The notes: generated by a model not told the origin, from the sequence alone. A stretch of DNA of 64,000 nucleotides from Oculina patagonica (GCF_052425735.1 NC_135760.1:21204001-21268000), one strand, 5' to 3'; shown: positions 7,327-64,000, numbered from the stretch's first letter. Translations and numbers: made by a program.

Positions 7327-9059
7327 CTGTTCCTGGACGTCTTCAACAACAAGCTTTAGTGACTTGCGCAGTACATTGTAAGATCGATACGTCTGCGTTC
7401 TCAGCAGGCCAATGGACTCCAGCAGAGAAAGCGTCCTGTACGCATGCTCAAAACCATAAGTCTTGAAGAACATAGAAAACCACGTAAGTCTTTTTTAACA
7501 ATCTTTGTTTGGGTTGGGAAATTGGGAAAGAGAAGAAAAGGGAATTTTTAGAAAGAGAAAATGCAAAAAGAGGGGTCGATTAGGAGAGTTTTGTATCAGC
7601 ATGGTATCTGGTGATATTCCTCTCAATTTCGCAAGAAAAGTTTTAATGTTTACAAATTTCTTCATTACACCAAGACATATACAGGCATAGATTGAAACTT
7701 TTGTTTTCCAATTTTTATTGAACAACATGACTAAGCAAGGCTGATACGGCAAACATAATGTTACTTAGCGACATCGCTAAAGAATGAGGGTCGAAAATGG
7801 TCGCTGTTTCACAAACTGAAACATTCAACGCAACAAGACAACGGACAACACCAACCGGTAGAATTTCACGACAGTAGAACTCCAGCATCGTGGATTTGAA
7901 GCCGTTATTCGTCAAACATTGAGCACACAGCAAACGAAGCACCTTGTGAAAAGTGAAAGAAAATTAAGAAAATCAACGGCAGTTAAGTAGCGTAAGCGAC
8001 AGGTCGAGAAGGGAGGAGGGGGTGGGGGGAGGGGAACAAGCGAGGATCGCGAGAAAAGGAAACGAATAGCACGATCCCACGTAACGTTTTCATTTCACGC
8101 TTTACTTCTTCCTTGCCCGCACCTGCTTTGGAGGGTAGGAGAGTGGTCACGAACTTGGTCAAACATTTCTAAACTTATCTAAATGTGGATGTGTAGATAG
8201 TCCTGCAGGAACCCTTATTTGAAACCTTGTGTATTGCTTAGGGAACCATACACCCTGTTGTTGTGTTTCCTTTTGTTCTCTCGGAAAATATAACGTGAAA
8301 CCGACTGCAATTCAATTGCATCGGCAGTCGAGTGACTTCAGTATCAACTTCAAGATGACAAAGGGGAATTTACCACCTTAGCCAACCTGTGAAGCTACCA
8401 TTTGAACTCCAAATGACTGGAGGCTAACACAAGCTTTTTGAATTTGCCACGGTGGCCGTCCTACTTTTATCAACCAAAAGTTGGTAATAAATTACTTTTT
8501 TCTCCAGTTACTGTTTTATGGCTCTGAAACGTGGAGAGTAACAGAAACAACCTCCAACAAACTGCAGTCCTTTGTCAACAGATGCCTGAGGTCCATCATG
8601 GGCATCCACTGGCCAGAGGTCATAACGAACGAAGAACTGTGAACAACAACTGAGCAGGAAAGGATCAACATCCAGATAAGAAGGCAAAAGTGGGGTTGGA
8701 TTGGGCACACCCTCAACTGCAATGTCACCAAGCAGGCACTGAGGTGGAACCCACAGGGGAAGAGGAGCCGAGGCCGTCCCAGAAACAGCCGGAGGAGGAC
8801 GGTAGATGACGAGGCGAGCAAAGCAGGCTACACCTGGAGGCAGATTGAAAGGATAGCCCAAAACAGACAACGATGGCGAGCAACAGTTTCCACGGACCTA
8901 TGCTCCACTGGGAGTGAAAAAAGAAGAAGACTGTTTTATTAAAATTTGTGCACAGGTAATGCATGTTCTCTTTTCCTACCGTTATAAGCGGTTTCTTTAT
9001 TCCAAAGCATTTCTCTATGTAGGGGTTGATTTTGTCCGTGTCCAAACCTTGCGCGAGTT
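7327..9059 (-). pseudogene. VPS33A: VPS33A 3' fragment, copy A (3 exons: 8980-9059, 7856-7942, 7327-7461), decaying
   Basis: AG/GT-bounded exons encode [47 protein letters not shown] and [11 protein letters not shown]...VEDVQEQ, matching VPS33A. Downstream exons are missing and the copy carries replacement changes absent from the other copies. Confidence 0.85.
8520..8929 (+). mobile_element. 5'-truncated RTE-like LINE 3' end
   Basis: Encodes YGSETW...LQSFVNRCLR...WIGHTL...ALRWNPQGKRSRGRP, with an (AAG)n tail. 10-bp TSD ACTGTTTTAT at 8510-8519 and 8930-8939. The paralogous intron at about 18472 is empty. Confidence 0.85.
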
Positions 9060-9455
9060 CTGAGAAGTAAACAGAAAAAGAGAATATAATGTATTAATTG
9101 ACAGAATCAAATACCTGGTATTTTACATTTTTTTAAAATGTGCCAGTAAAGTTAGAGCAAAAGCAAATAAAAACATAGAACCATGAATTTTACCAGACAT
9201 AGAAACGGAATTTTACGGTATACGAATAGTCTCTGAAACAAACACATAGTTGTAAATTCAATTGCATAGATAGTTATTAATATATCGCTTAAAAATCAAA
9301 AAGCTTGTGAAACCAGGAGCCATAATCGATTATGGCTCCTGGTGAAACTTAGTAATCGCTAAATATTTAAGCTCGTCACGAGAATTATTTGACTTTCAAA
9401 AACTGCAACATTGCTACATGGCAAAAGCGCTAATGAACCAACACATTCTTTGTAA

Positions 9456-9700
9456 TACAGTCGAAGCTCTCGTAAGCGGACACCCTCGGGACGCGAAAAA
9501 AGTGTCCGTAACTGGAGCTGGCCGCTTACAAGAATGGTTCTCGTAAGCGGCCACTTGAGGCGTAAGGGATATATGGCCGCTTACGGGAGCTTGCCCAGCT
9601 AACAATAACCGGACGGACGTGGATGGCGACAAAACAAGCACTGAAATATGTTACTGTAATTACTGTAAAATCATTGTGTCCAACAGCGATGTGAAGTGTC
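9456..9700. mobile_element. Truncated copy of the CAGTCGAAGCTCTC MITE family
   Basis: Closely matches the left part of the complete element at 13713-14334. Confidence 0.7.
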
Positions 9701-9714
9701 CACAAAGAGGAATA

Positions 9715-10670: not shown

Positions 10671-12725
10671 ATGGGTGCTGGAGGATCAACAAAGCTCAAA
10701 ATAGTACAGCCGCCAGCTAACGCGGCGGTCATTTCCAACTCTCCAGAATCTCAAATACAAAATCCCGTTCAACCAAAGGTGCTTCAAGAACAGTGGTTGA
10801 GTCACGACAGGCCGCCTAGGGAGCACGAGAGAAATGAGACGAATTCGATTCAAGATAACACTGAATGGGCTGTGTTACACATAGATACGCTTGAAAGGTA
10901 CAAGATAAACTACCCGGAACAAGCCGACGATCTGCAAACAATGTTTGAGAATATGCAAGTGTTACGAAACACTTTCGCGAATAATTCAAGAGCACAAGAT
11001 CGGTATACGGAGCTGGTGAGCGCCAAAATTGACCACTTGATCACTACAAGCCGTAACATTGACACTTTAGACGAGACTAGCGGGACCAGAATCATGGAGT
11101 TTGTTTTGAAAATCGACGGCGCAGCGGTGTTGCAAAAGTTCGCTCAGAATTGTTTCAACGATTACTACGAGATGGATGATAAATCAGACGATGAAAGCGC
11201 AGATAATAAATCAAAAGGTTCCACTTGTTTTCATAGTCTCAAGTACGTGTTAATAACAATTCAAAACTTTGCAGACTTTCAAGACGCCTTTTGCAAGGCG
11301 AGTGCTAAAGCGGGAGTTGTTCCCATGTGTCTAGAAAATATCATACGACTCGATAAGGAAAATGACAACTGGCAAAATGGAGATGAAGGATCAGAGCTAC
11401 CTCAACTAATCAAGTCATGTCTCGGAATTTTGCACAACATTTCACGGAGGTTGAGAGATCGTGAGTTGTTCCCAAACAGCGACGAGACTTTGCTCTATTT
11501 TGCCAAAGTTGAGATGACAGGAATTGCTACCAAGGCCTTGCTAAGCTTAGGGTACCTAGTAAATGAAGAAACCAATCATTTAATTTCAGCGGATGAATCC
11601 TGGCTTGGCTTTATCGTAACAATATTAAACAAAGCATGTCAGTCTGAAGACCGAAGATGTGACGGATTTTCCGCGAAAGAGCTTGCAGAAGGACTCAGCC
11701 ACCTTGCCATCAACGACAACAACAAGAAGACCCTGGGCAACAATGGAGCCGTACGCGTGCTAACGTCAATTCTGAAGACTTCTAACGACGAAGAGGAACG
11801 CGCGAGTGCTGCAAGGGCTCTGTGGATGTTGGCGTTTGACGACTCCAACAAAGATGTCATTAGGCAAGAGGAAGGGGCGTTGGATACATTACGCGAGTTA
11901 CACCACAGTGGAAACCCGGTGGTGCAAAAGGCAGCCGCTGGTGCATTGTGGGAGATTGAAGGAAAGACAGCAAGAAACAATGCCGAGAAGACAAAAGAGG
12001 CAACTGGAAATCACGTGATGATCAGCTACCAATGGGATTCCCAAGAAATCTTAGTGGAAGTCAAGAACAAGCTTCAGGCCAATGGATATCGAGTGTGGAT
12101 GGATCTGGAGCAGATGGGTGGGTCCACACTTGAAGCGATGGCCAAGGCTGTCGAAGACTCCGCTGTTGTACTGGTCTGCGTGTCACAGCGCTACAAAGAA
12201 AGCCCCAACTGTCGATCAGAAGCCGAATACGCCTATCAACTGAGAAAAGACATCATTCCTTTGATGATGCAAAGCAATTACAAGGCAGACGGCTGGTTAG
12301 GAATGCTGGTGGGGACAAAACTATGGATTGGCTTTCAGAGTAAACATGTTGTTCATTCTGCTGTAGGAAAACTTATTAAGGAGTTAGATGGAAGAGGAAA
12401 AGATTGCGATGCGACGGATGGGCCACCAGAGGCAAACATTCGACCAAGTGAGGCCAGTGTTCTAGGAGCACCACGCCCAGCCACGGATGTCTCTGGCTGG
12501 ACAAATCAAGATGTGAAGAAATGGCTCACAGAAATTGGATTGGGGAAAATATGCAAAACGAAAAACATTTCGGAATTAAATGGGCAAATATTGATCGATC
12601 TTCAGAAGCTCCGCGGAGAATGCCCGGAATACTTTTACAAGGGTCTAGAACAAACTCTGAACCTGAAAAACATGTTTCATTTGCTCAAGCTCACAAATGA
12701 GCTAGAAAAACTTCTAGGACATTGA
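10671..12725 (+). CDS. Intronless ARM-repeat / TIR / SAM protein, paralogue 2 (684 aa, predicted N-myristoylated)
   Basis: Uninterrupted ORF starting MGAGGSTK. ARM repeats, a TIR domain at about 12010-12390 with the putative catalytic Glu in CRSEAEYA (codon 12219-12221), and a SAM-like domain at about 12490-12720. Confidence 0.93.
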   Translation: MGAGGSTKLKIVQPPANAAVISNSPESQIQNPVQPKVLQEQWLSHDRPPREHERNETNSIQDNTEWAVLHIDTLERYKINYPEQADDLQTMFENMQVLRNTFANNSRAQDRYTELVSAKIDHLITTSRNIDTLDETSGTRIMEFVLKIDGAAVLQKFAQNCFNDYYEMDDKSDDESADNKSKGSTCFHSLKYVLITIQNFADFQDAFCKASAKAGVVPMCLENIIRLDKENDNWQNGDEGSELPQLIKSCLGILHNISRRLRDRELFPNSDETLLYFAKVEMTGIATKALLSLGYLVNEETNHLISADESWLGFIVTILNKACQSEDRRCDGFSAKELAEGLSHLAINDNNKKTLGNNGAVRVLTSILKTSNDEEERASAARALWMLAFDDSNKDVIRQEEGALDTLRELHHSGNPVVQKAAAGALWEIEGKTARNNAEKTKEATGNHVMISYQWDSQEILVEVKNKLQANGYRVWMDLEQMGGSTLEAMAKAVEDSAVVLVCVSQRYKESPNCRSEAEYAYQLRKDIIPLMMQSNYKADGWLGMLVGTKLWIGFQSKHVVHSAVGKLIKELDGRGKDCDATDGPPEANIRPSEASVLGAPRPATDVSGWTNQDVKKWLTEIGLGKICKTKNISELNGQILIDLQKLRGECPEYFYKGLEQTLNLKNMFHLLKLTNELEKLLGH

Positions 12726-18612: not shown

Positions 18613-19573
18613 CTGAGAAGAAAATAGAAAAGGAGGATAATAATAGGGATATATTCATAAACAGAATCAAATACCTTGGTATTTCTACATTTTTTGAAAA
18701 GATGTGCCAGTAAAGTTTAGAGCCACCTTATATTTTTATTTAGGGGGAATTATACCCGAAGGTCGTTTTTTCATAGCTTAACAGGAGTTTAACGTAAATG
18801 TCTCGTTCGCGTTTCAAGGAATCCAAAAACGCCCTCATTATCTCATATATCTACGTTTAACCCCTTGGCGCCGGGATTTTCTTTGAAAAAAGCACATTTT
18901 TTGGACATTTTTGACATTTTCTGGTCAGATATGAACTAAATCTGCTTCAAACTACTGGAATCAGCAATTGGAACATGAAGGCATACCTTTCTTCTACTAG
19001 CATCACATTTTATGACATTACTGTTCGGGCATGCTAAAAAAAAATGGTTTAAAATTGGTAGACGGACACCAGACAGTCCCCTGACAACCTGGAGTGCTCT
19101 TGGGTGGGGTCAACTGTCTGGCGGTGTTTCAATTTTTTTTTCTTTTTTCAATCCCTTCTTTAAACCTCTTAAAATTTAGGTATAATGCCCCCTTAACGTA
19201 ATGTGACTCTCAAGCCACTCGAACACTGGTGTACCACAAACATAGCTCTAGCCATAGTTATTAGAGGGAAATGGTTATGAGACTTATGACGCTCGGCAAA
19301 CTTGAAAGAAGCAAACAAAGATCCTAAAATTTAAGTTGGAAGGTCCACGACCGTGCACAATCTTTTGCTTTCACTCACACACTTTGGTTGAATTGCGTGA
19401 CCGTCACGTTTTTATTGGTTAGTTGCTCGGACACATCTCATAATCTATCGTGTTTTGTGCACGGCCGAGGCCAGAAAAGCAAACAAAAAAACATCAAACA
19501 GAGAATATTGCCAGGTTTCATAACCATTTAACGTTATTAACTATGTCAGTTTTAGTCATATAGGAGACTAGCT

Positions 19574-20171
19574 TGGGAGCTACGGTTTCCAAAGAGGGCG
19601 GAGGCACTGAAGACATCCACAACAGAGTAGTCAAAGCGAGAGGGGTATTCTTGAAATTGAAAAAGATCTGGAGTAGCAATAGCATCGGTCGACGAACCAA
19701 AGTCAGACTATATAAGACACTGGTAAAGCCAGTCTTGATGTATGGCTGCGAGACGTGGAAGATGAATAAAAGTGATGAGAACAAAATCGACGTCTTCCAA
19801 AGCAGATGTCTTAGACGGATATTTAAAATACGCTGGCAGGAAAGAATTACAAACAATGAAGTCCTGAAGATGGCTGAGATGGAAAACCTCAGTTGGGGCG
19901 TGCGAAAGAGAAGATGGAAATTCATCAGCCACATAATGAGGAAAGAACCAAATAACGACTGCAGAACTGCATTAACCTGGACCCCAGAAGGGCGGCGAAA
20001 ACAGGGCAGACCAAAGACAACATGGAGGAAAACAGCAGGGAGAGAAAGGGATAAAGCTGGATGGAAGAACTGGAGCGAGGTACAAATTGCAGCGGCTGAC
20101 AGAGATGGTTGGCGGAATTGTGGTGAGGCCTTATGCGCCACATGGCACGAAGAAGATAGGTAACAGGTAAC
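19574..20171 (+). mobile_element. 5'-truncated RTE-like LINE (reverse transcriptase C-terminus)
   Basis: ORF ...KPVLMYGCETW...FQSRCLRRI...WTPEGRRKQGRPKTTW with a (TAACAGG) tail. 12-bp TSD AGGAGACTAGCT at 19562-19573 and 20172-20183. Confidence 0.9.
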
Positions 20172-29641: not shown

Positions 29642-29643
29642 AT

Positions 29644-40814: not shown

Positions 40815-40866
40815 ACGGAGGTGCGAAGTCAGATTACCAAGTTGGCTAAACGCCTTGTTACATTGA

Positions 40867-40898
<32 letters not shown>

Positions 40899-47339: not shown

Positions 47340-47390
47340 AAAACATCTGATTGGTCCGCTACTAGCAAGAAGAAGAAAGGGCGGGAAAAT
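47340..47390 (-). promoter_or_regulatory. Candidate PRDM9 promoter (CCAAT box and GC box)
   Basis: CTGATTGG (CCAATCAG on the minus strand) near 47347 and GGGCGGG near 47378, upstream of a probable 5' UTR donor (AAG/GTAAGC) near 47136. Confidence 0.4.
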
Positions 47391-47474
47391 GAACCCGCGG
47401 CCGCGGGAGGCATTTACAGCATTTTTGCCTTTCCTGGGGTGGAGTGGGGAGATGATACAATATACCAGGTAGGC

Positions 47475-47928
47475 CTAGACACAAATATCCCAAAAAAGGC
47501 TCTAAAAATCTATCTGGAAATTCCCAGTTTTTCCCCTAAAAATCCCTCAAAAAATCCCTAAACATCCCCAAAATTTTCTAAAAATCCCTAAATATCCCAA
47601 AATTTTCTCGGCTCTCCCTTTAAAAGAAATGGCACGGTACACATTTTCAAAAGGCACTCAAATGGCTCAATTCCCTTGGAATGATGGGGTGCATTAGAAA
47701 TAGGAAACACGGATTGCAGTCTAATAGTCACCAATAAGTAAAGAATGCGACAAAATTATCATTTCATAGGAATTTTAAATAAAGCGGCAAAGAAAATAGA
47801 ACAATTTTTCTTCCAAATCATCTAAAAATCCCCCCAAAATCCCATTTTTTCTAAAAATCCCCGAAATTTCTAAAAATCTCCTGATGCTCTAAAAATCCTA
47901 AAAAAAATCCGGCTTTTTGTGTCTAGGG
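47475..47928. mobile_element. MITE-like element with internal AAAATCCC repeats
   Basis: CCTAGACACAAA...TTTGTGTCTAGG inverted ends. Confidence 0.55.
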
Positions 47929-49203
47929 TTTTATAGGTTTGCAATTGCAAAAAAATCCTACAGAATTTTTAAGTTATCTCCCAATTAGCCACAATACTTC
48001 AATGGAACAGATAAAAAAGCGATATTTGAGAGATCGAAAAAGGATAGAGTAAACTTTTTGAAAATAGTTAGGGTCTGGCAAAGACGGGTCCGCCAAGGCC
48101 AGGGGGTTCTGCTGACACCGTTATCGCGAAGTGGGGACGCTTTTAATTTATTAATGCCACAAGTCAATCACTTTAGTGTAATAGATTAGAGTAGTACATA
48201 GTTTTTTATTCTCTCCAGTGCAAGGTTGACTTTGAAAAACTGTTAAAATATATTTCGGATGTCATTACTAATGACATCTGTCCACCAAATCTCATATACA
48301 ATAGGGCCATTTATCCAAGTTGGTGTGATGTCTTACGACTTAACCGACTAAATAAAATTTTTAAAAATGTAGATGTAATTCCTATTCCCGCACTTAATCT
48401 CTAATCAGCTCACCCTTCACTAAGAAGAAGGCTCGCATAGAATTCAGAGATACTGTCTTAAGCACGATTCTGAGGCTTTTGTGAGCCTCATTTTTGGAAA
48501 AATGAATAATTAGATCAAGGCTTACTTAGATCTACTGTGCTTTATATTTAAATACAATATAATTTAATAATCTGATGGAGGAATATTAATGCATTGGCCA
48601 CACCCTTTTTTAGGGCATCTGAGAATTGGACTGGATATAAGGAACAAAAAACACAAACAGTGAAAATTATGTATGTTTATTATAGCTAGCTAGGTATTTG
48701 AATTTTATTACAATTTTTATTCATATTTCACATTTAAAATTTTACATTAAACCCATGCTACAAAACACCTTTTGCAGATAATATTTATTTAGATTTGTAC
48801 TGGTTGTCAGTGTAATAAAACACTGCTTGAAGGTGAGTCCAATTTATATAGACCTACATGTATAATTGTATGTACATAATTTATAAAACTTTCTCAACAG
48901 TAAATGACCCATATACTCTTTACATGTACTTATTTTGCCCAGTTAACTTTGTGCCAGGGATTCTGATAATGATTCAGTGTTACTACCCTACAGCAATAAG
49001 TGCACATGTGGTTGTTCCTCTGTGTGATTATTGCAATAGGATATTCTTTGCATATAGCAAATTAAAAATACTCAGGGGCACCCATATGAAAATGTCTGGG
49101 GTGATCAATAATCCCAGGCTACTAAGGTTTTTAATCTACATAATTACCACCACAAAAGTTATCTGGAATATATCTCCTTTTTATGGTATTAACTATAAGC
49201 CAG

Positions 49204-49204
<1 letters not shown>

Positions 49205-49241
<37 letters not shown>
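49205..49241. repeat. (AAC)n microsatellite
   Basis: Direct reading. Confidence 0.9.
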
Positions 49242-49242
<1 letters not shown>

Positions 49243-50992
49243 AACATTAGGAACTACTTTTTGGAATTGACACCTGACTATGGGTGAAAATAAATTTAAG
49301 ACAAGAGTTCCTTTCAAAATTTCCAACAATCACCCTAGTATCAATTGTGGAATTCCCCCCTCTCCCATACAAGGGGAAATAAACCAATAACAAAACCAAT
49401 CAGTGTCCTGACATCAAGTCGCTTTGTGTGGCAAAGAATTGTTCCACTTCATGTCTTAGTAGCCCGCCACAAAAGGGAAAGCTAACAATGTACATAACAA
49501 GTATTTATCAAGTTCAATTATGAATAAGAAGAGGTAGGATTAGTTGCCTTCCCTTATTAAAATTCAAAGGGATACCAATCATAGTTGAGTAACACAAAAT
49601 TCACCTGACAGTATGTAAAACTACATATTAATTTTTTTTTAAATCCTCAAAAAAAAAATCCTAACTGTTTAATCTAATAATCGACTTATCAGACTGCAGT
49701 GTGAGCCCTTGCAAACATGTCACACCAGCTTTATGCCAGAAGTTGAATGATGCTCCTTATAAATTCTTAGTTGTGGCCAAAAAAGCTGGTTACACTCAGT
49801 CTATTTTTTATAAAACTATAAAACAAGAAGAAGGACAAAACAACTTCAGAATAGATTATGCTTCTTTTTCAACCTCGTTCCCAGGGTCTACTCCACTTTC
49901 AAAATGGTGGCTGGGCGTTCTTACATCAACTCCAGTCCCATCCCTGCGAAGCTGGCACACCAACCATCTACGTGGTTAGGGGTTTGCACAGGTCTAATAA
50001 CCCTAGCCTGATTCTCAGGGCCGGGTTGTTCAAAGCACGATTACCGTATTTACTCGAATAAGCGCTGCCCCCGAATAAGCACCGCATCTGGGACAATAAA
50101 GTTAATAAGCGCCGCCCCCGAATAAGCGCCGCAGTCTCGATGCGGGGCTTATTTGAGAAATTCCGTTTAACTAAAAACAGCACTACAAAGCAGCTCTAAA
50201 ACAAACATGTTTTCATCAAAAGCGATGTTTTGTAGTTCGAAGTAATTGTTTTACTGCTCGCACATTAGTTTTTCTATCCAACATTCTTACAAAACGTAGT
50301 TCTGTAAATGTGTGAAGGCCGCGAACTTTGCCAGAACAGCTAGCGCCACTTCTCTCTTCAGCAAGAGACGAATACTGACAATGCAAAGATACTATTTTCG
50401 ATAACTACAAAATATAAGATTCTTTATGGCGTCCAAATTTTAAATAAGCGCCGCCCTCAAATTAGCGCCGCCCTCGATTAAGCGCCGCACTTGAGGCGCG
50501 AAAAATTGAATAAGCGCCGCGGCGCTTATTCGAGTAAAATTATATGGTAAGCTAATCCAGGATAAGTGAATATATTGTCTATAAGTGTCGCGGAGTAAGA
50601 GGTGAGACATGTTGGATTGGAAATTAGTGGAAGAAACGCGTGAGAAAATAATGATGATGATGATAATGAAGTGTGAAATTTGGTTTCAATTTTATAACAT
50701 TTCGTTGAGGTTTTCTGTTTATATTTTCTGTACCCCAGTTTTGACGTGGATCAATCTCAAACTTCACAAAACATTAGCTATGGAAAACATTTTAAAAAAG
50801 AGAGAAATTAAAACCTCAATCATCTTTTAATCCTGGGTTAGTGTTAATCGCCTATTGAACAACCTGGCCCAGATCATGACAGGGACTGTCTGAGAATCAG
50901 GCTTGGGTAAATTTGGAAATTGTGCCAATACTTCTGACAAGGGTTGTAGTTGTTATTACTAGTGTGCACCGAGGTTGACGAAAACCTACAGA

Positions 50993-51838
50993 TTAGTCAT
51001 CATTAAACAGTCGTGTGAACTTTGTAATACCATTGGGGAGTGGCGCGGAGATATCACAGAGCTTGACACCCGTGCTTGGAAGAGTTTCTACTAAAAGAGA
51101 AACTGGGATCCAATTCAGGTCATCTTGAAATTCTGTGTTGATTTTATGAAATACCATAGTGACCAAACCAGATGATTTGGAACCATCAACAAAAAGACAC
51201 ACTTTCCATTTGTCTTTGTTTACATGGACATTGTTTCTGTGTTTTTCCTCTGCTAATAACTCTGGATCATCACTGGTTCCAGCTCTAGTGGGTTCTGTTA
51301 CATGTATGTTGTATTTATAACCACTAACTTCCACATTTTCTCCAAATTTTCTCCGAAAAGCCTCCTCGCTTTTCAGTTTGGCCCATGCCGCCTTAATAGC
51401 AGACTCCTTCTGTCTCATTTCCTCGGATTTTTCCTCCATGACATTTCCTCCTTCTGCCAAGTCTTTGGGATCTAACTGGAAGACAGTCGCCATTTGAGGC
51501 GAGATAAATGGTGTCTTCTCCAATCCAAGTTGAAGCCGTCCAGTCGCATACAACGTAAAAGTCACCGTAACACAAGACCAAAACACGAAACCACCAGCCA
51601 GGCACAAATATTTGAACACTTTAAAGGTTCTAGATCTCCCAGAAGCTTTCGAAGAAAGCAATCTGACCTGCACGGAAGCCGGCCATCTTGTAAACTGAAG
51701 TTGTGAATTGTCTTTCGCTTTCGTCACGATCGCTCTTGTAACTCCATATTTTGGAATCAAATTAGAGCAAAATTTAGATCTTATGCTAGTAAGGGCAGTT
51801 AAGCTTACTACCCTGGGATGAAACAAAAAGCAAGCCAT
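50993..51838 (-). CDS. Intronless TIM21/COA1-like mitochondrial inner-membrane protein
   Basis: First ATG at 51838. Basic, Ser/Arg-rich presequence-like N-terminus, one TM segment (YLCLAGGFVFWSCVTVTFTLYA), then AWAKLKSEEAFRRKFGENV...CLFVDGSKSSGLV...SLLVE, a pattern similar to the Tim21 intermembrane-space domain. Confidence 0.65.
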   Translation of the reverse strand: MACFLFHPRVVSLTALTSIRSKFCSNLIPKYGVTRAIVTKAKDNSQLQFTRWPASVQVRLLSSKASGRSRTFKVFKYLCLAGGFVFWSCVTVTFTLYATGRLQLGLEKTPFISPQMATVFQLDPKDLAEGGNVMEEKSEEMRQKESAIKAAWAKLKSEEAFRRKFGENVEVSGYKYNIHVTEPTRAGTSDDPELLAEEKHRNNVHVNKDKWKVCLFVDGSKSSGLVTMVFHKINTEFQDDLNWIPVSLLVETLPSTGVKLCDISAPLPNGITKFTRLFNDD

Positions 51839-51963
51839 ATAAAAATGGAAATTCTTGTGTTTAGAAGTCTTCGAATCAGCCTGTCTTCGATTCTGCAACG
51901 TCTGCAAAGTAGAAGGCGCAAATTCGCAAACGTTCAGCGGTATTACATTTAGAAGAAAACAAC

Positions 51964-54900
51964 ATGGCGGCTGCGGGAGGGAGTCACTTGTCTAGTGGCC
52001 GAGTTAACGTAGGATTGCTGCGGGAATGTGCGAGAAGAGAGCTTCTTCAGTGCTTAAATAAACAACCTGGATCTAAGGTAATGCGAAGTAAATTAATCTT
52101 TACGTTTCTTGTAAGCTACAGTGCTTTAGATTTCAAAATGTGTGATCAATCTAAAAATTAAAGTCCCTTTGCATATTCGTTGAATGTTCCATAGTCTGTT
52201 TTCTTGCAAGGAGAAATCAAAACTTGCAAATTTTAACCTCCACTAAAGGTCGTTGTTATCGCTTTTTTGAAATGCCATACAATCCTAGCTCCGGATCCAT
52301 TATGTTTCAATACTTTAGAGATGAAAAAATTATGCTGGAATCATTCGACCAGCCAGTTAGGACATGCACCCCCCAACTGGGGGCTGTTGGTAAAACCCGT
52401 GACGGTCAAATTTGGAAAAACATGTGACGGCTATGTCCGTGATGGATCCGTGACATATCCGTGACGGATAGATTCTTACATACCGTAAAATTCCGGTTAT
52501 AAGCCCTGGGCTTATACAACTTCGTAAGCGGTTTTGGGTGGGCTTATAAGCGGAGGGGCTTATATTCGGGAGGGCTTATAAGCGGAATAAAAAAACCTTT
52601 TGGAACGAGCCACGGGAGTGTTGATCGAAATACGTTTCTACGTAAAAAACGCATAATAAAGCAACATTTAGCCCTGTTCAATACTGTCATCCGGCAAAGG
52701 GGGGGGCTTATATCCGGGAGGGCTTATAACGGGATGTATTTTTTGTTTCCAGATAGATGGGTCTATAACCGGGGGGGCTTATAAGCGGGAAATGCAGGGG
52801 GGTACATGTCCTAATTAACAAGACAAAGGACAATGTGGGTTTGTGCATCCACATTTCTGGGGACCATTTGTCCCTTGGGACCCCGTAACTACACTTCTTT
52901 TGTGGGAGAGCGGAAGGCTTTTTGTCAGTTGATTTTATCTTGGGTATACTAACAGAGCTGAATCGTCAATTCTTGGCTCTACGCAACTACGGAGAAACTG
53001 TCTCCAAAGATGATCTGGGATGCTGGTCAAAGCATCAAATTTAATAATAATTTTCTTTTTTCTTTTGGTTATTTTTTAACAGGCCATAGTCTGGGATGAC
53101 AAGCTGACTGGACCATTTGGTTTGATTGCTGAGTACAAGTTACTCAAGGTATGAACACGTTAAAGGCAGGGGTATTTTGCAGAATGCAGAATGCAGAACC
53201 CAGAATGATGGAATGGTTGATTGATGGAATGGTTAATTGATGGAATGGTCGATTGATGGAATGGCAATAGTACAATACCCTTGGGACCCTAACCAACAAA
53301 TAAAAGCTAACCGCAAGCAAAACCAGAGTGAGAGCCAACCGCAAGCAAACAGGAGTGAAAACTAACTGTGAGCAAACCGCTGACCATTATTCTGCATTCT
53401 GCATTCTGCAAAAATACCCCTGCTGCCAGTAGGTTAGTCTGAGTCCTGATTAGTATGTATTATTATGATTTTAATTTAATTATCATTTTATAAGTTGTGT
53501 TTGTTTTATTTGCCAGGAACATGAGGTTGAAGTCATGTTTCCTCTCCGTCCTGGCCGGCTGCCTCCATCTCAAGTCCATAATGTTATTTTCATAACAAGA
53601 CCTAAACCCTCATTGATGGACATAATTGCTGACAATGTTCTCAGGTAATACAACTTTAAACTCATAACAAAAGAGGAAGTCTGTAATGTGTTGTTGTCTT
53701 CAGTGGCTTTAATGTTTGTGCAGAGTGACTACAGTCGAAGCTCTCTTATTGACAGACACTCTCGTAAGCGGACAGCTCTACTTACGGCCGCCTTGTCTGA
53801 AACTCTGTATTTTTACATTCTTGTAAGCGGACAGATAGATAGATAGATAGTTTATTGATATTCTTACATGACAGTCTAAAAACTGAATTGCGTAAAAATT
53901 TACAAAGAGATAAATTATTAGAAATACAACTATTAAAATCTATTATAACTATATTAAAAATACAACTATTAAAATCTATTATAACTATATTAAAAATTTG
54001 CCATAGAAGGAAAAAAGCTATGTTTAAAACGATTGGTTCGAGCCTTACATGCTTGACATTCCCGTAAGCGCCCGCGGACACTTTCAGAGATTACGACTTA
54101 GACTTTTTCTTTGTTTTTAAGCTCCCGTAAGCGGACAGCCCAAAGAAAATCCTATTAACTACCCTTGTATCTTGTTTTTGTGAATAAACTTCACATTACC
54201 ATTCGTCACAGTGATTTAACAGTAATTTAAGTATCATATTTTAGTGCTTGTTTTGTCGTCATCCACGTCTGCCCGGTTATTGTTAGTTGGGCAAGTTCCC
54301 GTAAGCCGCCATCTTTCCCCTACACTTCTAGTGGCCGCTTACAAGAACCATTCTCGTAAGCGGCCAGCCCCGAGGGTGTCCGCTTACTAGAGCTTTGACT
54401 GTTACGGTTTTGTTTAATGTTGGCTTTGCACATGTATTACTTGCACAGTCTGGTCTGAGCCAGGGATTGGAACCTCTGGGCTAATCTGAATGCCTGCCAA
54501 AAAGATGGCTGAATCTGATTGGGTGTTGAAAACTTGTTCATTCACCACTGACAATATCTGCCACACATTCACAATCAAACCAGAACCAGAATAGGCCTGG
54601 GTTCTCGTTACCAACTTAGCCTCGCCTCGCACTTGTGGGTTAGCCCAGAGCCACTGAGTTTCCTGACCACTGGTCGGAGGAACAAGGCTCTGGGAATGAA
54701 ATTGTTACTTGCAATGAAAAGTTCTTATTTTGTTTTCCAAATGAGCAAAGCTGCGTTAATGTTCCTAGCAAATGACAAAACATTGTTCCACAAATGTTGT
54801 TTCCTTAATGTTTCCCCAACAGTGTTTGGTGGAAGCAAAACAACAAATGATTTTGAGTTTTTTCAGGAACATTGTGCTTTGGCAGCAAACATTTTTCCAT

Positions 54901-57900
54901 TTATGCACCAGGGGCACAGTTTTGGGAAACTACAATTCTTTCTCCTTTTCAGAGGCTTGAGAATACAAAACATACTGCAGACATTTTTTAAGTGATATTG
55001 TTACATACAGCCTTGTCACTGTTGTCAGTAGTAGTGTCTAGAAAAATTCCTGGAAGCAGTTCATAGAAGAATTACTGTAGCTTTCTTTTTTGTTTTGCTC
55101 TAATTTCTTAGTGAGGAAGGCAGAGAAAGCAAGAAAAAAGAGTTCACTATCTTGTTTGTTCCAAGAAAAACTATGTTATGTGAAAGAAAACTTGCTGTAA
55201 GTAAGAAAATAATAATTATTATAGATTATTTTTATTTAATTAACAGGTAAATGTAGTTTGTGGCTGCCTGCTATGGTGATTACATGAATTGATGTAACTG
55301 TTGTTATAATAAATATATGTAGACACCAGATAATAATCTATAGTGTATATATTTTGTTAAGTACTATTCACTTTGACGTTGAACTTCTACCATTACATAC
55401 CTGCCAACCCCCAGAGTACAAAAATCTGGAGACATCTAGAAATCTTTGCATTTTAAGGATATCATTTAAGACAATGCATGAATACTGTGAGAAAATCAGA
55501 CAGATATTAAAAAACTTGGAGATCCCGGGAAAATCCGGAGAGTTGGCAGGTATGCCATTATCAGTTTTTTAGACTCCTGTTAACCAGGACAAAGAATAAA
55601 CACACTGCAGTAGTGTACCGAAGAATCTTTGTTTCTATTTACTCCTCCTGAAAATTTGGTGATCAAAGTAGCTGCCTGTTGGTGCTTAGTGAAGGGGCCT
55701 ACTTCCTTCATTTTATTTAAACCAATTTTTTGAACATGTTAGGTACAACAGTCATTAGCAACAAGCAGTCTAATATTCAAGATGAGTGCTTTAATGCTAC
55801 TTTTAATTCATTATTATGTTTGCAGGAGCGCAATGTGTCATTTGTTAACATTGATGAATACCCCTTGGAACTGATACCCCTGGATAGCGATGTTTTGTCA
55901 CTTGAAATGGACACTAGCTTCAAGGTATATAAAATAAAAAACAAGTATCCATATAAAGTGATCTTCTCTATAATAATAATAATCTTTTATTAGGAAGCCT
56001 TCATTCACTATACAGTGGTTTTCAGAAAGGTCCTAACTAAGATTAAAAATACTTAATAAGACTATATACAATAAAACGAAAAATACCTAAGAATTAAAAA
56101 CTATTATTAAAAACTAACTTGAATACAAAAGAAAGAATTAACTAAAAAACCTACTTAGAACGCTACGCTTAAAGTTTCTTTCTGATTTGCATTAGTTACA
56201 AGTGGATTTTTGGGGAGCAGGGATGGCGCAGTGGTGAGAGCGCTCGCCTCCCACCAATGTGGCCCGGGTTCGATTCCGGCCCGGTGTCATATGTGGGTTG
56301 AGTTTGTTGTTGGTTCTCGCCTTGCTCCGAGGGTTTTTCTCCGGGTTCTCCGGTTTTCCTCCCTCCTAAAAAACCAACACTTCCAAATTCCAATTCGACC
56401 TGGACAGAGGACCCGCATGAAAACCAGCGAGCGCTGATGTGGCTTCCTCTCTAAATATAGTAATTTATTTTCCATGATTTTAAATACATCTCCAGAGGGG
56501 CTCAGGGATGAGGGAGGGTAGTGGTATATGGGGTATAAATACCTTTAATAAGGTTACTATTTTTAGTGACTACTAATTTTAGCGATTTTTTCTAAGCAAG
56601 ATTTAGCGACTATTAAATTTAGCGATTTTCCGAAAATTAAAACAACAACAACAATTTTAATATAGAGCTGAGATGGAAATAAATGTTCGGTAATAGAACA
56701 GAGTCACTTAAAATTGAACGAACATTATCATTGTCAGAAAGAACAATTAAAAGTGAATTGCAAATGTTAGAAAGTGAGACCTCGTCAGGGTAATCAGTCA
56801 TATTCTCCACGATGCCGGCGACCCCAGCTCTTTCCCAATCCTTCTTAATTGTTGCCCTACCTTTTGATGTTGTCATATAGTTGAACAGGGCCACTATATG
56901 TAATTTTGTATTCCTCTGGCGGGCGGGGGTATTAATTTAACGTGTATTAAATCTGACTGAGACAAATTTTAGCGAGTACTAAATTTGGCAATTTTGGCCC
57001 AACTCGCTAAAATCGCTAAAATTAGTAGCCACTAACAATAGTTACCTTAAGGTATAAGGGGTAAAATGATTTTTTGGAAACTTGACCCAGATAAGTATAA
57101 TTAAAAAAGAAGACCAATCTGGGTGTGGGTCAAGTCTCATGTGTCTCCTAATAGACAAATGAGAGAGAGCTTTCATCTTTGAAAGATTTCTTGTAATATG
57201 TATTAATATTGAGCTAAACCACCAAAACAATTTGTATCCCTCCTTGAAGAGTATAAACATAAGCCCTGACCACCCTTGTCAATACCAAAATCTATAGTTG
57301 ATGACCCTAAAAGAGATGTGAACCACGGTGGGCACAAAGTGACCCAAAAACGCTCACCTTCATTCATCTTTTTCGTTTTTGATACTGGTTACCTGAAATT
57401 TTGCATAAATATAGAACTCGTCATTCTGAAAAATCGCATGTTTTTTGTTTTATCGAATTTCGAATTTTTTGGCGGGAAAATGACGAAAATCGAAAAACTG
57501 ATGAAATTCGAAAAACAAAAAACATACGATTTTTCAGAATGACGAATTCTATATTTGTGCAAAATTTCAAGTAGCCAGTATCAAAAACGAAAAAGATGAA
57601 TAAAGGTGAGCGTTTTTGGGTCACTTTGTGTCCACCGTGAACATTCCCACCCCTTTGACATAATAAATTGACAACATTTTGGCACGACAGCCCTTACTGG
57701 TTTTCACGTGGTTCCTCTATCCAGGTCAAATTAGAATTTGGAAATAATGTTTTTTTTTCACAGTTATTTGGAAAGCACTCTTTCAGACAGTCTAACTTTC
57801 AGTTCTGTTTGCCCATTTTTGTTTTGTTTTGTAGGAGTGCTATTTGGAGAATGACTACACATCCTTGTTCTATGTTGCCAACTCCTTGATGACTCTTCAA

Positions 57901-59026
57901 ACATTATATGGCACAATTCCAAAGATTTATACTAAAGGAACCATGTCCAAGGTGTGAATGAAATATATAAGTAGTCTGTTTCATTTTTAGAGTAAAACAT
58001 TTGTATGAATACGGCTAGAATATGATACAAAAACTAGACTTTTACTTTTTTAACAATTGTGAAAATATGCCATAGGGTTATTTTTGTTCATTTACCGTCT
58101 CTTGGGGGGGGGGGGGGGGCTTATATTTTTGGAGAGTGCTCATTTTAGGAGGGTTTATTTTCAGAAGGAATTTTGCTTTTGGAAAATGATTGGATCTTGA
58201 ATAACATTTACCGGTATTTATAATATGAGAATTTTGAAGTGAACTCATGATCTGAAGCACAAAACCAGGAACCAACTTTACAATGAGGAGGTGGTGGGGA
58301 GGGGAAGGGAACTAGATGAAATTACTAATTAATCACCTACAGGGCTAAATCAAAACACAAGCCAACAACTCACAATTTGTAAGGTGATTTGGTTCTCAGT
58401 GGATACTGGGCTATGTTTTTCTTACCTCACTCCAGTTGGCAATGTTATACAATGAATCTCAAATAGCATCTTAAATCTCAAGAATAGAGTCAAGAATCAA
58501 GTCTTAAAAGAAACTGACAACTTACATTTGCCCAGTACTCGAATCATGTAGTATTAACTTTCATCATTTATTTGAAATTTTGCCAGTTAAGATAACATGA
58601 AGGCTTCAAACCCTGAAGGAAAATTCAAAAAACATAGTCTGACTTGTATCACAATTTGTCTTTTATTCTATTTTTTAATGGTTAATGAAATAAATGAGAT
58701 ACCGTAAGTACTTAGGAAATAAGGAAATAATTTCGCACATTACATTTTCTCTCGTTTGACATGAGACAAAACCTGTGGGGAAACTCACTAATTTCACTCA
58801 CCACCTTTTTTACTCACACTTTTGGTTAAAATCACACTTTTTTCTCCTCAGCGTGTCTTGGACATGATGATGCGCAAGAAGCGAGAAGCAGCTGATTCAG
58901 AAAATCAAGTCTCACCACAGATTGACACTCTTCTGTTGATAGACCGTAATGTAGACTTGCTGACTCCATTATTCACCCAGCTCACTTATGAAGGGCTGAT
59001 AGATGAACTCTATGGAATACACCACA
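51964..59026 (+). CDS. VPS33A: VPS33A (HOPS/CORVET SM protein), 5' part, 7 exons (51964-52077, 53083-53148, 53517-53644, 55112-55196, 55826-55924, 57835-57951, 58852-59026); runs toward the gap
   Basis: [21 protein letters not shown]...[43 protein letters not shown] and [30 protein letters not shown], with canonical splice sites and matching phases. Confidence 0.93.
53165..53423. mobile_element. MITE with GCAGAAT-repeat TIRs
   Basis: GCAGGGGTATTTTGCAGAATGCAGAATGCAGAA mirrored by TTCTGCATTCTGCATTCTGCAAAAATACCCCTGC. Confidence 0.75.
55396..55554. mobile_element. 159-bp MITE with 6-bp TSD
   Basis: CATACCTGCCAAC / GTTGGCAGGTATG flanked by CCATTA on both sides. Confidence 0.75.
56212..56455 (+). 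mobile_element. Second tRNA-derived SINE family
   Basis: A and B boxes (TGGCGCAGTGG...GGTTCGATTCC) followed by a non-tRNA body. Confidence 0.75.
56540..57055. mobile_element. MITE with TTTTAGCGA subterminal repeats
   Basis: TAAGGTTACTATTTTTAGTGACTACTAATTTTAGCGA mirrored by TCGCTAAAATTAGTAGCCACTAACAATAGTTACCTTA. Confidence 0.7.
57324..57639. mobile_element. 316-bp foldback MITE with CACGGTG/CACCGTG ends and 3-bp TSD (CMC/Chapaev-like)
   Basis: Almost fully palindromic, with AAC duplicated at 57321-57323 and 57640-57642. Confidence 0.8.
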
Positions 59027-59539
59027 GTAAGTGTTACATAAAGGGCTAAATGATGAACGTTATGAAAATATACACCACTGTAACATGAATGGCTTACCCT
59101 CTGGGGGTGCATATCAGCAGGAATTGCACGAAGGAGTGATAACTGAAGCATAATTTTATTTATAAGTCTTACATGAAAGTTGGTAGGTGAACTTTATGGC
59201 AAATACATACATATCTCTTATTATCCACTCCCCTCTGGGATTTTCAAGGATAATTTTACAACACTGGTTGTAGAACTTTGCCAGACTTCTTATGGTGCAG
59301 TTTACAAGTAATGAAGGAATGAGTAATGATGCCCCCTATCTGAGTGTGAAATTAAGATAAACCACTACACCCAAGGGACTACGTCCCCTACTCTTTACTA
59401 AGAGTGTGTGGGTTCTTTAACCTCCCACAGAATTTATAACATGTGCAAGGATTGTGAGACGGGGCCTACTGTTTATCCTTCTTATCTAAGATAACTAGAA
59501 TATCTAACCATTTGCAGATGCCATTGCAAAGACAGCATA

Positions 59540-59580
<41 letters not shown>

Positions 59581-60151
59581 TGGGAGTCGAACCCAAAACC
59601 TCCCGCACAGTAGTCCGACGCTCTACCAACTGAGCTAACCGGTCGGAAGTTTCAAGATGAACAGTTGAACCTCTCTTTTCAAACACAACTGTAAATTTTA
59701 CCCCCAACCCCCACCTATTACAATCAGTTTACTTGATCCAAAAGAGACCAAAAGTCATACATTACAAACCTCTGTAATGTGAACACCTCCATAATATGGA
59801 CACTCTTCCCTGCTCCTTTGGTGTCCATATTAAAGAGTTTTACCGTACCCCATTCACGCTTTTTTAGTCTGCATTTGAACCTAGTGGACCATCAGACTTG
59901 CGCTTATCTTTGGTTTCCGTAGCATTAAGTGGCTCCTGGTAGGAGTATTTCCAGCTTCCCCTGAATAGTGAGGCAAGTTCATCGCAGGGCTACCCCTGGC
60001 TTCAAATTAGCCAGTACCCAGCGGCAGATCCCGGCCTTGAAATAAGGGGGCCCCTTTTTTGTGTGTGAACCCGCACCTGGGGGAAGAGGGACATGTGCAT
60101 TATGTGTGTGCTGTAATGAGTGGAGCTGGATAATAATCAAAGATTTTTCAT

Positions 60152-60651
60152 NNNNNNNNNNNNNNNNNNNNNNNNNNNNNNNNNNNNNNNNNNNNNNNNN
60201 NNNNNNNNNNNNNNNNNNNNNNNNNNNNNNNNNNNNNNNNNNNNNNNNNNNNNNNNNNNNNNNNNNNNNNNNNNNNNNNNNNNNNNNNNNNNNNNNNNNN
60301 NNNNNNNNNNNNNNNNNNNNNNNNNNNNNNNNNNNNNNNNNNNNNNNNNNNNNNNNNNNNNNNNNNNNNNNNNNNNNNNNNNNNNNNNNNNNNNNNNNNN
60401 NNNNNNNNNNNNNNNNNNNNNNNNNNNNNNNNNNNNNNNNNNNNNNNNNNNNNNNNNNNNNNNNNNNNNNNNNNNNNNNNNNNNNNNNNNNNNNNNNNNN
60501 NNNNNNNNNNNNNNNNNNNNNNNNNNNNNNNNNNNNNNNNNNNNNNNNNNNNNNNNNNNNNNNNNNNNNNNNNNNNNNNNNNNNNNNNNNNNNNNNNNNN
60601 NNNNNNNNNNNNNNNNNNNNNNNNNNNNNNNNNNNNNNNNNNNNNNNNNNN
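60152..60651. other. Scaffold gap (500 N)
   Basis: Run of N. Confidence 1.
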
Positions 60652-60819: not shown

Positions 60820-62782
60820 TTTTTTGAAGACCAGGAGGCAGTCGCTGGATTTCTTCGACTGCAGGTCCCGGGAGCAGCCGAAGAACCTGAAGAAAAACAG
60901 CAAAACTTTAATATAAAAATATTAATTTTCCTCAGTGACTTCTAATGTTAGTCTGAAAATTCGCTGATACATTCATGGTACTGTAAACTGCATGTCAGCT
61001 TGGCAATCCACTGAAACATAATACAAAGTTTCGATAATAAAACTATAGAGTGTTTTCATGGCAGCCATGTTGGAGAAGTCAAACAAAAGAAGATATTTGC
61101 TGAAAAAAGATTTTTTAAGATTCATTCGATTCCGTAATCATTGGGTTGTTACCTCTTCCAGTCCTCTCCAGCCCTGCGGCCGAGCCAAAAACTGAGCCAG
61201 TCGTACAGTCAGCGGTGCGTATCCTGAAAACACGTAAGCGATGTCATTCGGATTCTGCAAGAACAAATAATACAATAATAATAAATGTAAACTCCACGTG
61301 ATCCTGCAACTTTTAATAGCTATTAAATATAACTTTCAGGATGGTTTAAAATTTCAGCACTTGTTTTTTTTTTTTTTTTTACAGATGTAAGTGTACACAT
61401 GTAATTGTTTCACAGGTGTTACAAGTATATAGCCGTTTACCAGACTGGTCACATACTTCATTGCACCACAGGGTGATTTATTAAATTTAGAAAGGCGAGG
61501 ATCATATTTTTCTTTGTCAGGAGCCCACCAGGCTCCTGTCTGATAAGACTTAAAGAGCATGCTCTTTCTTTTCTTCCCAAATTTGAACAGAAGGAACAAA
61601 AAATTAGAGAGCAGCTCTATGTTCTGAAGAAGAAGATACGACAACAAAAACTGTCTTAACCATCGGGTGGTCACCAACAAACGTGTTCATCCACGCCCTT
61701 TCCCCTTCTTCCCCCTTTAAATCTAGCCGAGTAAGCCAGCTAAAGAAACAAATCACCGCTCACCTGTTCCTGAACGTCTTCAACGACAAGCTTTAGTGAC
61801 TTGCGCAGTACATTGTAAGATCGAGACGTCTGCGTTCTCAACAAGCCAGCGGACTCCAGCGGAGAAAGCGTCCTGTACGCATGCTCAAAACCATACGTCT
61901 ATAAGAACATAAAAATTGGAAAAGGAAAAACGGGAATTATCAGAAAGATAGTTTTGTATCAGCATAGTACATGTATAGAACAGTTTTTTGAACAATATGA
62001 CTAAGCAAGGCATACATAATGTCACTAAGCAACATCGCTTAAGAATGAGGGTCGAAAACGTTTGTTGTTTCACAAACTAAAACATTCAACACAACAAGAC
62101 AACGGACAACACCAACCTGTAGAATTTCACGACAGTAGAACTCCAGCATCTTGGGCTTGAAGCCGTTATTCGTCAAACACTGAGCACACAGCAGACGAAG
62201 AACCTTATGAAAAGTAAAAGAAAATTAAGAAAATTAACGGCAGTTAAGTAGCGTACACGACAGTTGCGAGATGGGAGGAGAGGGTCGGGGGAAAACAAGC
62301 GCGGAACACGCTTTTCCTGTCCCTTTCACGTACCTGCTTTTTAGGGTAGGAGAGTCAGTGGTCACGAACTTCGTCAATTAGTGCTAAACGTAACTAGATG
62401 TGAATATGTAGACAGGACTGCAGAAAAATTTATTTGAAGCCTTGTGTATTGCTTAGCGAATCATACACCCCGTTTTTCGGAAAATATAACGTATGACTAC
62501 AATTTTACTGCGTCGGCAGTCGAGTGACTTCGGTATCAACTTCAAGGTGGTGAAGGTAAATTCCACCTTAGCCAGTTTGTGAAGCTTCCAAAACTGAGAG
62601 GAAATCCTAATGACTGAGGGCTAATTGCCACTATGGCCACCCTAAGGTGGCTACTGTTTTATTAGGTGTTATGTACAGGTAATGCATGTTCTCTTTGCCT
62701 ACCGTTATAAGCGGTTTCTTTATTCCAAAACATTTCTCTATGTAAGGGTTGATTTTGTCCGTGTCCAGACCTTGCGCCAGTT
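60820..62782 (-). CDS. VPS33A: VPS33A 3' exons, copy C proximal part (62703-62782, 62117-62203, 61764-61898, 61153-61254, 60820-60886)
   Basis: Same five peptides as the first five exons of copy B, with intact splice sites. Confidence 0.85.
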
Positions 62783-63499
62783 CTGAGAAGAAAATAGAAA
62801 AGGAGAATATAATAGGAATATATTAATGAATATCAAATACTTTGGTAATTTTTTTTATTTTTTGAAAAGATGTGTCGGTAAAGTTCAGAGCCACCTTATA
62901 TTTTTATTTACGTAATGTGACTCTGAAGCCTCTCGAACAGTGGTGTACTTCAAACATAGTTTTAGCCATAATTATCAGAGCGAAATAGTTATGAAGTCAC
63001 TGATGGAAAAAATGGCGAATTCGGTTTTTGCGCGAATTCATCATTGATTGAGGGAAGAGGAGGCGGGGGGTGCATTTCTCCAAGATTGAGCCTAGCGTTT
63101 TAAATTGTTTTATTGGTGACAACAGAAAACGGAGTAGCCGAAAAAGGAATTGGGAGGAGGGTTCGCATTACAACAATGAATAATACAATCATAGCTGGCA
63201 TCTGTGTTCACATTTTGCCTCATTAGCATACGACTTTTGCGAAGAGAAGGCACACTGCTACACAGCTATTTTATTAACGTTGACAGATGGTCTTGGTATT
63301 CACTAACATTTGCATATTGGCTTAAAGAAAATGTAAAAGTTTGTATTTTTGCACGTGAAGAATTCATGAATTTGTTTTCCTCTCAGGAGGCATTTTTCTG
63401 TAGCTTTACTTTCACTGTCGAGTGGCTTTGAAAAGTCTTCTAACTTCAATGTACCTTGTTCAACGTTTTTTTTGAAGCTCGGTCGGAGACTGAAGCTCT

Positions 63500-64000
63500 T
63501 ATACTAATCAAAAAAATTATTGTAAACAAAAGCCACGAACCATAATTAATCAAACACAGAAGGGCGGCTGTTGGCTTTTGTCCACAAAAAGGAATATACA
63601 TTTTGAATTACGAAGTAGGATTAAGCGAGTTACAAGACAAAACAAACCGGCTTAGAAAGAGATATACGGGAATTTATAGCGGGAAGAAGCAAATTACGTA
63701 CCAGAGGTTGCGAAAAACCGTAACGTATTAATTTAATTAGGTATGATTGAACAATTATTGCGTGACAACACCAAAGAACGTTTGCGTGACAGTCCCTTCC
63801 TAGCGATAGCACAGAGCATATTACAATTTACATTGACGTCAGTGGGTCGCCGCCCGCAGATCAACAGCCTAATTGATTGCTTTCGCCTGGAAACAGAAAA
63901 TATTATTCTGTTTGTTTTCAACCAGTACAGTGTAGCCGACGGAAAAACTACAATCTCAACTACACTTCGTTTCGTATTTCAGTTAATTATTAACCCGGGA
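63500..64000 (+). promoter_or_regulatory. Upstream region of a probable fourth ARM-TIR-SAM paralogue
   Basis: Collinear with about 20780-21289, ending in the shared GGAAAAACTACAATCTCAACTACACTTCGTTTCGTATTTCAGTTAATTATTAACCCGGGA, which lies about 170 bp before the paralogue 3 ATG. Confidence 0.75.

Follow-up and report, generated by a model that had tools for sequence, protein, structure and literature searches.

In the stony coral Oculina patagonica, a member of the suborder Vacatina ('robust' stony corals), the trafficking gene VPS33A, which encodes a HOPS/CORVET subunit, carries two intact genes of an armadillo-TIR-SAM (ARM-TIR-SAM) type on the opposite strand of its tenth intron, while further copies of the same gene family, interleaved with partial copies of the VPS33A 3' exons, lie downstream. 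The locus is covered in large part by a 64,000-nucleotide stretch of chromosome NC_135760.1 (21204001-21268000 of assembly GCF_052425735.1, a 529 Mb genome), hereafter the window. The best explanation for the whole, to which I would give a probability of roughly 85%, is that an ancestral antisense guest gene in intron 10 was spliced over by its host, and was then amplified in the Oculina lineage in a way that dragged the host's 3' exons along.

The window was fetched together with 60 kb on each side, and coordinates below 1 or above 64000 extend the window numbering into these flanks. VPS33A consists of 17 minus-strand exons with GT-AG sites that translate exactly to the RefSeq VPS33A-like isoform X1 (617 residues), with exons 1-10 (84959-70659, minus strand) located just outside the window. 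The protein carries PF00995 (Sec1/Munc18 family), and a 398-residue query made of exons 1-10 showed 90-97% identity to VPS33A of other corals and 55-60% identity to VPS33A of bilaterians; judged by sequence, the O. patagonica gene can be taken as a full-length Sec1-family orthologue of animal VPS33A. Intron 10 spans 70658-62783 (7.9 kb) and encloses two plus-strand ARM-TIR-SAM open reading frames (ORFs), C at 64146-66203 (685 residues) and D at 67888-69936 (682 residues), neither of which contains a stop. An earlier note, written from the sequence of the window alone, had placed ARM-TIR-SAM starts or promoters at 10671 and 21461 and predicted a third at about 64170: the first two are correct, and the third ATG, at 64146, is 24 bases off the prediction. 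The same note had suggested looking past 64000 for a further gene followed by the missing VPS33A exons, and this is what is found there, namely the predicted gene at 64146-66203, an additional one at 67888-69936, and then exons 10-1 on the minus strand.

Two RNA-like public runs mapped on 60652-66651 enabled splicing across this intron to be followed. Both runs contain the four CT..AC joints (GT..AG on the minus strand) expected for VPS33A introns 11-14, and in both the depth is nil in the VPS33A introns and in the spacer. Contigs that run past exon 11 continue with 30 nt that match 70661-70690 exactly, at the end of exon 10, and that occur only once in 184 kb, and contigs that run past exon 15 continue into a 29-mer identical to 28740-28768 in exon 16 (1 base off the duplicate of this exon in copy B, described below). 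Because the contigs join exon 11 to the exact exon 10 sequence, the VPS33A mRNA splices over the nested genes, and both ARM-TIR-SAM genes do lie antisense within intron 10, as the earlier note had supposed for a receptor gene in the intron preceding this exon. The same runs show fragmentary coverage of ORF C that ends ~12 nt past an AATAAA, 220 nt after the stop codon.

Downstream of exon 11, the 3' part of the host gene is repeated. A 10-residue peptide which the earlier note had picked out at three minus-strand exons (9059, 18612 and 62782) is present at all three (9031-9060, 18584-18613 and 62754-62783) and is the opening of VPS33A exon 11; all three exon copies have AG/GT splice sites (Table 1), and a fourth, belonging to a set termed copy U, is located at -5795, 5.8 kb before the window. 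In a self-comparison, the homology around the exon copies extends over 230-1400 bp at 73-85% identity, far beyond chance, and the paralogous units also share non-coding DNA. The order exon 13-12-11, spacer, ARM-TIR-SAM gene is found in four places, and there are two copies of the exons 17-16 region. The plus-strand ORFs next to the three exons each have ~685 residues in a single exon, with Pfam matches to Arm, TIR_2 and, weakly, SAM. The distance between exon 11 and the ATG of the plus-strand gene is 1.6 kb for the gene at 10671, 1.36 kb for that at 64146, and 2.85 kb for that at 21461 (unit B), where it is longer because of a retroelement-type ORF fragment in the spacer. The units fit the idea that each duplication carried downstream VPS33A exons along: there are four copies of exons 11-13, one of them extended to exons 11-17, each followed by a spacer and a gene.

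ARM-TIR-SAM ORFs in the window and its flanks total seven, of which two are on the minus strand (-12636..-10630 and 1767-3677) and five on the plus strand, starting at -3912, 10671, 21461, 64146 and 67888. An uninterrupted full-length frame is kept by six of them, the copy at 1767 being the exception. Genes C and D belong to a short duplication within intron 10 (63555-66294 versus 67287-70032); the other five genes, together with three partial VPS33A 3' copies, are found downstream and were made by segmental duplication. Without a 30.5 kb middle piece that is discussed below, the plus-strand order is: an ARM-TIR-SAM gene (-) and exons 13-11 (copy U); a gene (+), a gene (-) and exons 13-11 (copy A); gene A (+) and exons 17-11 (copy B); gene B (+) and exons 17-11 of the expressed VPS33A copy; gene C (+), gene D (+) and VPS33A exons 10-1.

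The partial copies differ in their fate. Copy B, in which the protein differs from the expressed copy in 3 of 233 residues, showed a synonymous divergence (dS) of 0.206 from expressed exons 11-17, a non-synonymous divergence (dN) of 0.0057 and a ratio of the two (omega) of 0.028; in total there are 31 synonymous to 3 non-synonymous differences (P = 4e-16 versus neutrality), and the changes on its own branch, polarised with Desmophyllum and Orbicella, are 8 synonymous to 0 non-synonymous. Compared with expressed exons 11-13, copy A (dS 0.209, dN 0.0312, omega 0.149) has an own-branch ratio of 1:7, and copy U (dS 0.201, dN 0.0244, omega 0.121) one of 3:5 plus one GT-to-GC donor change; this non-synonymous-rich change indicates that both short copies are decaying. 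Copy B is maintained by purifying selection as strong as the between-species constraint on the gene, which is unexpected for a set of 'passenger' exons. Gene conversion was rejected as the cause of its conservation: it would lower dS, yet dS is 0.21 and matches intron divergence.

It is a tentative proposal, with chances that I would put slightly below even, that copy B (14579-18612) is a functioning component of VPS33A and not debris, either as one of two selectively maintained, interchangeable 3' halves, or as a lone C-terminal fragment made from a divergent promoter region shared with gene B. Its most likely use would be as an alternative 3' end of VPS33A, with some transcripts ending in it as isoform X2; the RefSeq isoform X2 differs from X1 solely by the exon 16-17 residues of copy B. 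Both RNA contigs carry the X1-type exon 16 and not the copy B variant, in runs that were mapped at 60652-66651 only, and a search for transcript-derived proteins with the diagnostic residues of copy B, in clusters collapsed at 90% identity, gave only proteins of other species. With alternative 3' exon blocks that arose by tandem exon duplication, copy B shares being a full duplicate of exons 11-17 with splice sites and constraint; it differs from them in lying 13 kb downstream, past an opposite-strand gene, and in coding for a near-identical protein. If copy B is used, an antisense immune-type gene would separate both VPS33A 3' halves, up to three ARM-TIR-SAM genes would lie in one VPS33A transcription unit, and transcription of VPS33A and of the ARM-TIR-SAM genes could interfere mutually.

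Inspecting the same intron in other cnidarians, as the earlier note had advised, showed the nesting in two relatives. In Orbicella faveolata, VPS33A intron 10 holds one antisense ARM-TIR-SAM gene with its 5' end towards exon 11, and this gene is called in the public gene set of that genome too. In Desmophyllum pertusum, intron 10 is ~18 kb long and contains four ARM-TIR-SAM copies, of which three are sense; the single antisense one lies 1.36 kb from exon 11, with a spacing as in Oculina. A PRDM-type gene upstream of VPS33A is syntenic in both species. No TIR gene is present in VPS33A intron 10 of Acropora digitifera (184 bp) or Nematostella (124 bp). The three carriers belong to three coral families of the Vacatina, and Acropora to the Refertina. 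A protein tree puts the seven Oculina copies together in a single clade and the four Desmophyllum copies in a second one; since the copies of each species form their own clade, the two expansions were separate. A pair of ARM-TIR-SAM genes in Porites lutea adjoins an RFC gene; no exon of VPS33A lies within 10 kb of this pair, which is uninformative on the VPS33A intron of Porites.

The simplest history would start with one antisense guest, followed by independent local amplification in each lineage. In an ancestor of the Vacatina, an intronless ARM-TIR-SAM gene would have lodged in intron 10 of VPS33A in antisense orientation, with its 5' end pointing towards exon 11. In the Oculina lineage, a short tandem duplication inside the intron may have given rise to the two nested genes, and repeated duplication of a unit of ~10 kb (VPS33A exons 17-11, spacer and ARM-TIR-SAM gene) would have pushed extra ARM-TIR-SAM genes beyond the VPS33A 3' end, each with a partial copy of the 3' exons. 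Some units would later have been inverted or truncated.

Several observations weigh against this account or its supports. The two runs are only guessed to be RNA, although their spliced joints and empty introns favour RNA; they have no strand information, and a raw poly-A run mapped only 3 reads. The ARM-TIR-SAM tree groups A with C, while the VPS33A fragments group A with U and B, and this mismatch means that conversion or rearrangement also occurred, rather than a clean series of unit duplications. The choice between a gain in Vacatina and a loss in Refertina is made by parsimony only, from two outgroups and with Pocilloporidae left out. Regarding copy B, neither AATAAA nor ATTAAA occurs within 800 nt of its stop codon, and no transcript containing it was found.

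Could the host exons and the guest genes be coupled in function? The earlier note had speculated on a guard or decoy role, in which the VPS33A fragments would serve as decoys or guardees for the TIR proteins, or the nesting would tie HOPS-dependent maturation to immune signalling. The persistence of the nesting in three coral families and the purifying selection on one fragment set (copy B) would be in keeping with such a coupling, as would a GenBank model from Desmophyllum that fuses VPS33A exons 1-10 to a sense ARM-TIR-SAM ORF. However, every fragment in Oculina is opposite in strand to the TIR gene next to it, with no fragment joined to a TIR ORF, copies A and U (two of the three) are decaying, and the Desmophyllum fusion is an unsupported prediction that runs via 17 upstream residues. 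Gene nesting is common and as a rule comes without a shared function. I therefore see no support for a guard or decoy role, and regard the coupling as very improbable and the nesting as most likely a neutral accident of location; the arrangement as found says nothing on mechanisms of symbiosis or immunity.

A different concern is that the repeated VPS33A exons are assembly artefacts in the form of uncollapsed haplotypes or misjoins. Within the window, the 30.5 kb middle piece between two assembly gaps does look misplaced: it matches the adjacent region closely and collinearly in inverted orientation, the sequences flanking it abut exactly, and its VPS33A exons differ from the main copy by a dS of only 0.06. 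Copies A, B and U, on the other hand, are embedded in gap-free sequence that begins 60 kb or more before the window and extends to 29141, and they differ from the expressed exons by a dS of 0.16-0.21 and from each other in structure. Such differences are too large for alleles, and an artefact is a hardly credible source of the array; for the middle piece this explanation is the probable one.

The case for a misplaced middle piece comes from its edges. In comparison with the paralogous unit, homology on the left of gap 1 breaks off at the unit coordinate at which homology on the right of gap 2 also ends. In two independent repeat copies on other chromosomes, the 70 letters that precede gap 1 run without interruption into the 68 that follow gap 2. 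The flanks, 29141 and 60652, abut flush with no base lost, with RNA contigs joining exon 15 to exon 16 across them. Intron 15, which has an apparent length of 32 kb in the assembly, measures 383 bp in copy B, and in Orbicella and Desmophyllum it stays below 1 kb. A flush cut inside a small repeat, with both junctions unsequenced, is the signature of a scaffolder insertion, and the piece was probably inserted into this cut by scaffolding, as an uncollapsed haplotype or a nearby paralogue. Both gaps are in intron 15, so the reading frame of VPS33A is not at stake.

The piece holds, on the plus strand, VPS33A exons 1-7 (51964-59026; a 268-residue RefSeq model) and, on the minus strand, a PRDM-type zinc-finger gene (40172-46354); the collinear region at 72826-114190 likewise contains the PRDM-type gene and the 5' half of VPS33A. 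The PRDM-type gene of the piece has a PR/SET exon at 42909-43208 and a C2H2 array of 84-bp repeats at 40172-41311; in the counterpart gene (~93910-98759) this array is ~82% identical and is the most divergent part. Correct placement would make the piece a real inverted duplication of the PRDM gene and of VPS33A exons 1-7 within a 32 kb intron 15, and its product a truncated 268-residue paralogue. RefSeq annotates that product; parts of the piece are 14-20% diverged from the right arm, a high value for alleles; the three changes that arose on this copy are without exception non-synonymous; and right-arm homology ends ~1 kb short of each end of the piece. Set against the flush cut and the short intron 15 of copy B and of both relatives, these points leave correct placement unlikely, and the truncated VPS33A and second PRDM-type gene may be allelic rather than paralogous. 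I also considered this plus-strand 5' half of VPS33A as the host of the TIR genes in the window and rejected it: exon 7 is its last, exons 8-17 are absent from its strand, and its placement is doubtful.

The guest proteins belong to a conserved coral family of single-exon ARM-TIR-SAM proteins of ~680 residues, and in most of them the N-terminus is a myristoylation-type MGxGGS motif. A 688-residue stop-to-stop frame at 10659-12722, which starts four residues before the first Met of gene A, gave Pfam matches to Arm (395-433), TIR_2 (453-561) and one weak SAM (612-685). The glutamate of a 'CRSE' motif aligns with the catalytic glutamate in 'CVRE' of RPS4 and 'CWDE' of Cat1, and is invariant in 35 homologues (E93 of the alignment). 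The best structural matches to a TIR model of moderate quality (predicted local distance difference test score, pLDDT, 65) included human SARM1 and other NAD-cleaving TIRs, with SPARTA, Cat1 and RPS4 also among the best. On the strength of this alignment and model, the nested proteins may plausibly work like SARM1-type NAD-consuming signalling enzymes. Like SARM1/TIR-1, they combine armadillo, SAM and TIR parts in a single cytosolic protein, but SARM1/TIR-1 has the order ARM, two tandem SAM and a C-terminal TIR NADase, whereas the coral protein reads ARM-TIR-SAM with a single C-terminal SAM, and sequence similarity to SARM1 is confined to the weak SAM match. Owing to this permuted domain order, the nested proteins are not members of the SARM1 family.

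As in other animal genes nested in introns on the opposite strand, a complete, separately transcribed guest sits in a host intron and the host mRNA splices across it. The coral guest differs from the usual nested gene in being a multi-copy, immune-type gene that keeps duplicating and takes host exons along, with the result that the 3' half of the host is interleaved with guest copies. The O. patagonica case is an instance of two things already known, nested genes, which are common, and tandem TIR amplification in corals (PMC10236652). Coral TIR-domain clusters have been described as products of lineage-specific tandem amplification, in which introns and spacers diverge faster than exons (Noel et al. 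2023, Genome Biol 24:123, PMC10236652); that paper has zero occurrences of 'nested' and leaves VPS33A unmentioned, while here the cluster grows from the intron of a housekeeping gene. At this locus an immune-type gene that duplicates fast lives within an essential trafficking gene, an arrangement conserved across three coral families, and the case shows how such a guest can reshape its host by duplicating host exons.

Such an arrangement also calls for caution in annotation. In Desmophyllum, it gave rise to a chimeric 'VPS33A' model and a split gene: the deposited 1084-residue model (locus 10001-26172) combines exons 1-10 with a sense ARM-TIR-SAM gene by reading through the 17 residues of upstream sequence, and the true exons 11-17 are annotated separately (251 residues). 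In Oculina, the probably misplaced 30.5 kb piece makes intron 15 appear 32 kb long and adds a truncated paralogue that is possibly spurious. Table 1 gives the coordinates of the features in the window.

Table 1. Positions of VPS33A exon sets, ARM-TIR-SAM genes and other features, in window coordinates.
Feature	Position	Strand	Remarks
ARM-TIR-SAM paralogue	1767..4199	-	tblastn 40-684 at 3677-1767, 8-41 at 4199-4095; Pfam Arm/TIR_2/SAM
VPS33A copy A, exons 13, 12, 11 only	7327-7461, 7856-7942, 8980-9059	-	decaying pseudo-exons
ARM-TIR-SAM gene A	10671..12725	+	intact single exon, 684 residues, starts MGAGGS; 100% match to protein record
VPS33A copy B, exons 17 to 11, all 7 exons	14579-14685, 15351-15473, 15857-15923, 16426-16527, 17407-17541, 17843-17929, 18533-18612	-	all AG/GT sites intact
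Retroelement-type ORF fragment, spacer of unit B	19564..20160	+	Pfam DUF6451; no counterpart in other spacers
ARM-TIR-SAM gene B	21461..23503	+	intact, 680 residues; convergent with true VPS33A 3' end
Expressed VPS33A exons 17 and 16	27911-28017, 28647-28769	-	as isoform X1, exact reconstruction
Assembly gap 1	29142..29641		500 N, in VPS33A intron 15
Piece between gaps	29642..60151		30.5 kb, collinear with 72826-114190 inverted, 80-98% identity
Assembly gap 2	60152..60651		500 N, in VPS33A intron 15
Expressed VPS33A exons 15 to 11	60820-60886, 61153-61254, 61764-61898, 62117-62203, 62703-62782	-	exact reconstruction; spliced joints
Start of VPS33A intron 10 and upstream region of gene C	62783..64000		gene C ATG at 64146, just past window end

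The paralogue at 1767 is broken in its 5' part by a 410-bp repeat at 3681-4089, past which the longest ORF has 609 residues. A copy with 95% identity to this insert lies in VPS33A intron 5 (77754-78163), and the tandem twin of the paralogue, at -12636, is without the insert. Five paralogues begin with MG(A/T)GGS, a myristoylation-type N-terminus; the copy at -12636 begins with MELQ and would be without one.

The small repeat at the flush cut in intron 15 is a dispersed element of ~170 bp (29048-29141 plus 60652-60719) with at least 40 copies across chromosomes, of which copy B keeps only the first ~40 bp. In all contig-based runs that were mapped, summed contig depth was very high at 61052-61251 and 63252-63451, probably in part from repeat sequence in VPS33A intron 14 and the spacer; the first of these bins also spans exon 14. 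Downstream of gene B, 23605-26923 is a 3.3 kb insertion relative to unit A, and contains a short tandem repeat (24103-24417) with copies 52 bp apart.

Finally, a non-coding element of ~106 bp at 67240-67345, about 550-650 bp upstream of nested gene D, is the sole non-coding part of intron 10 that is conserved with Desmophyllum. There, it is found at 23263-23368, 27428-27541 and 32310-32423 of the locus, 550-860 bp upstream of each copy, and it could be a promoter or an exon of the 5' untranslated region.

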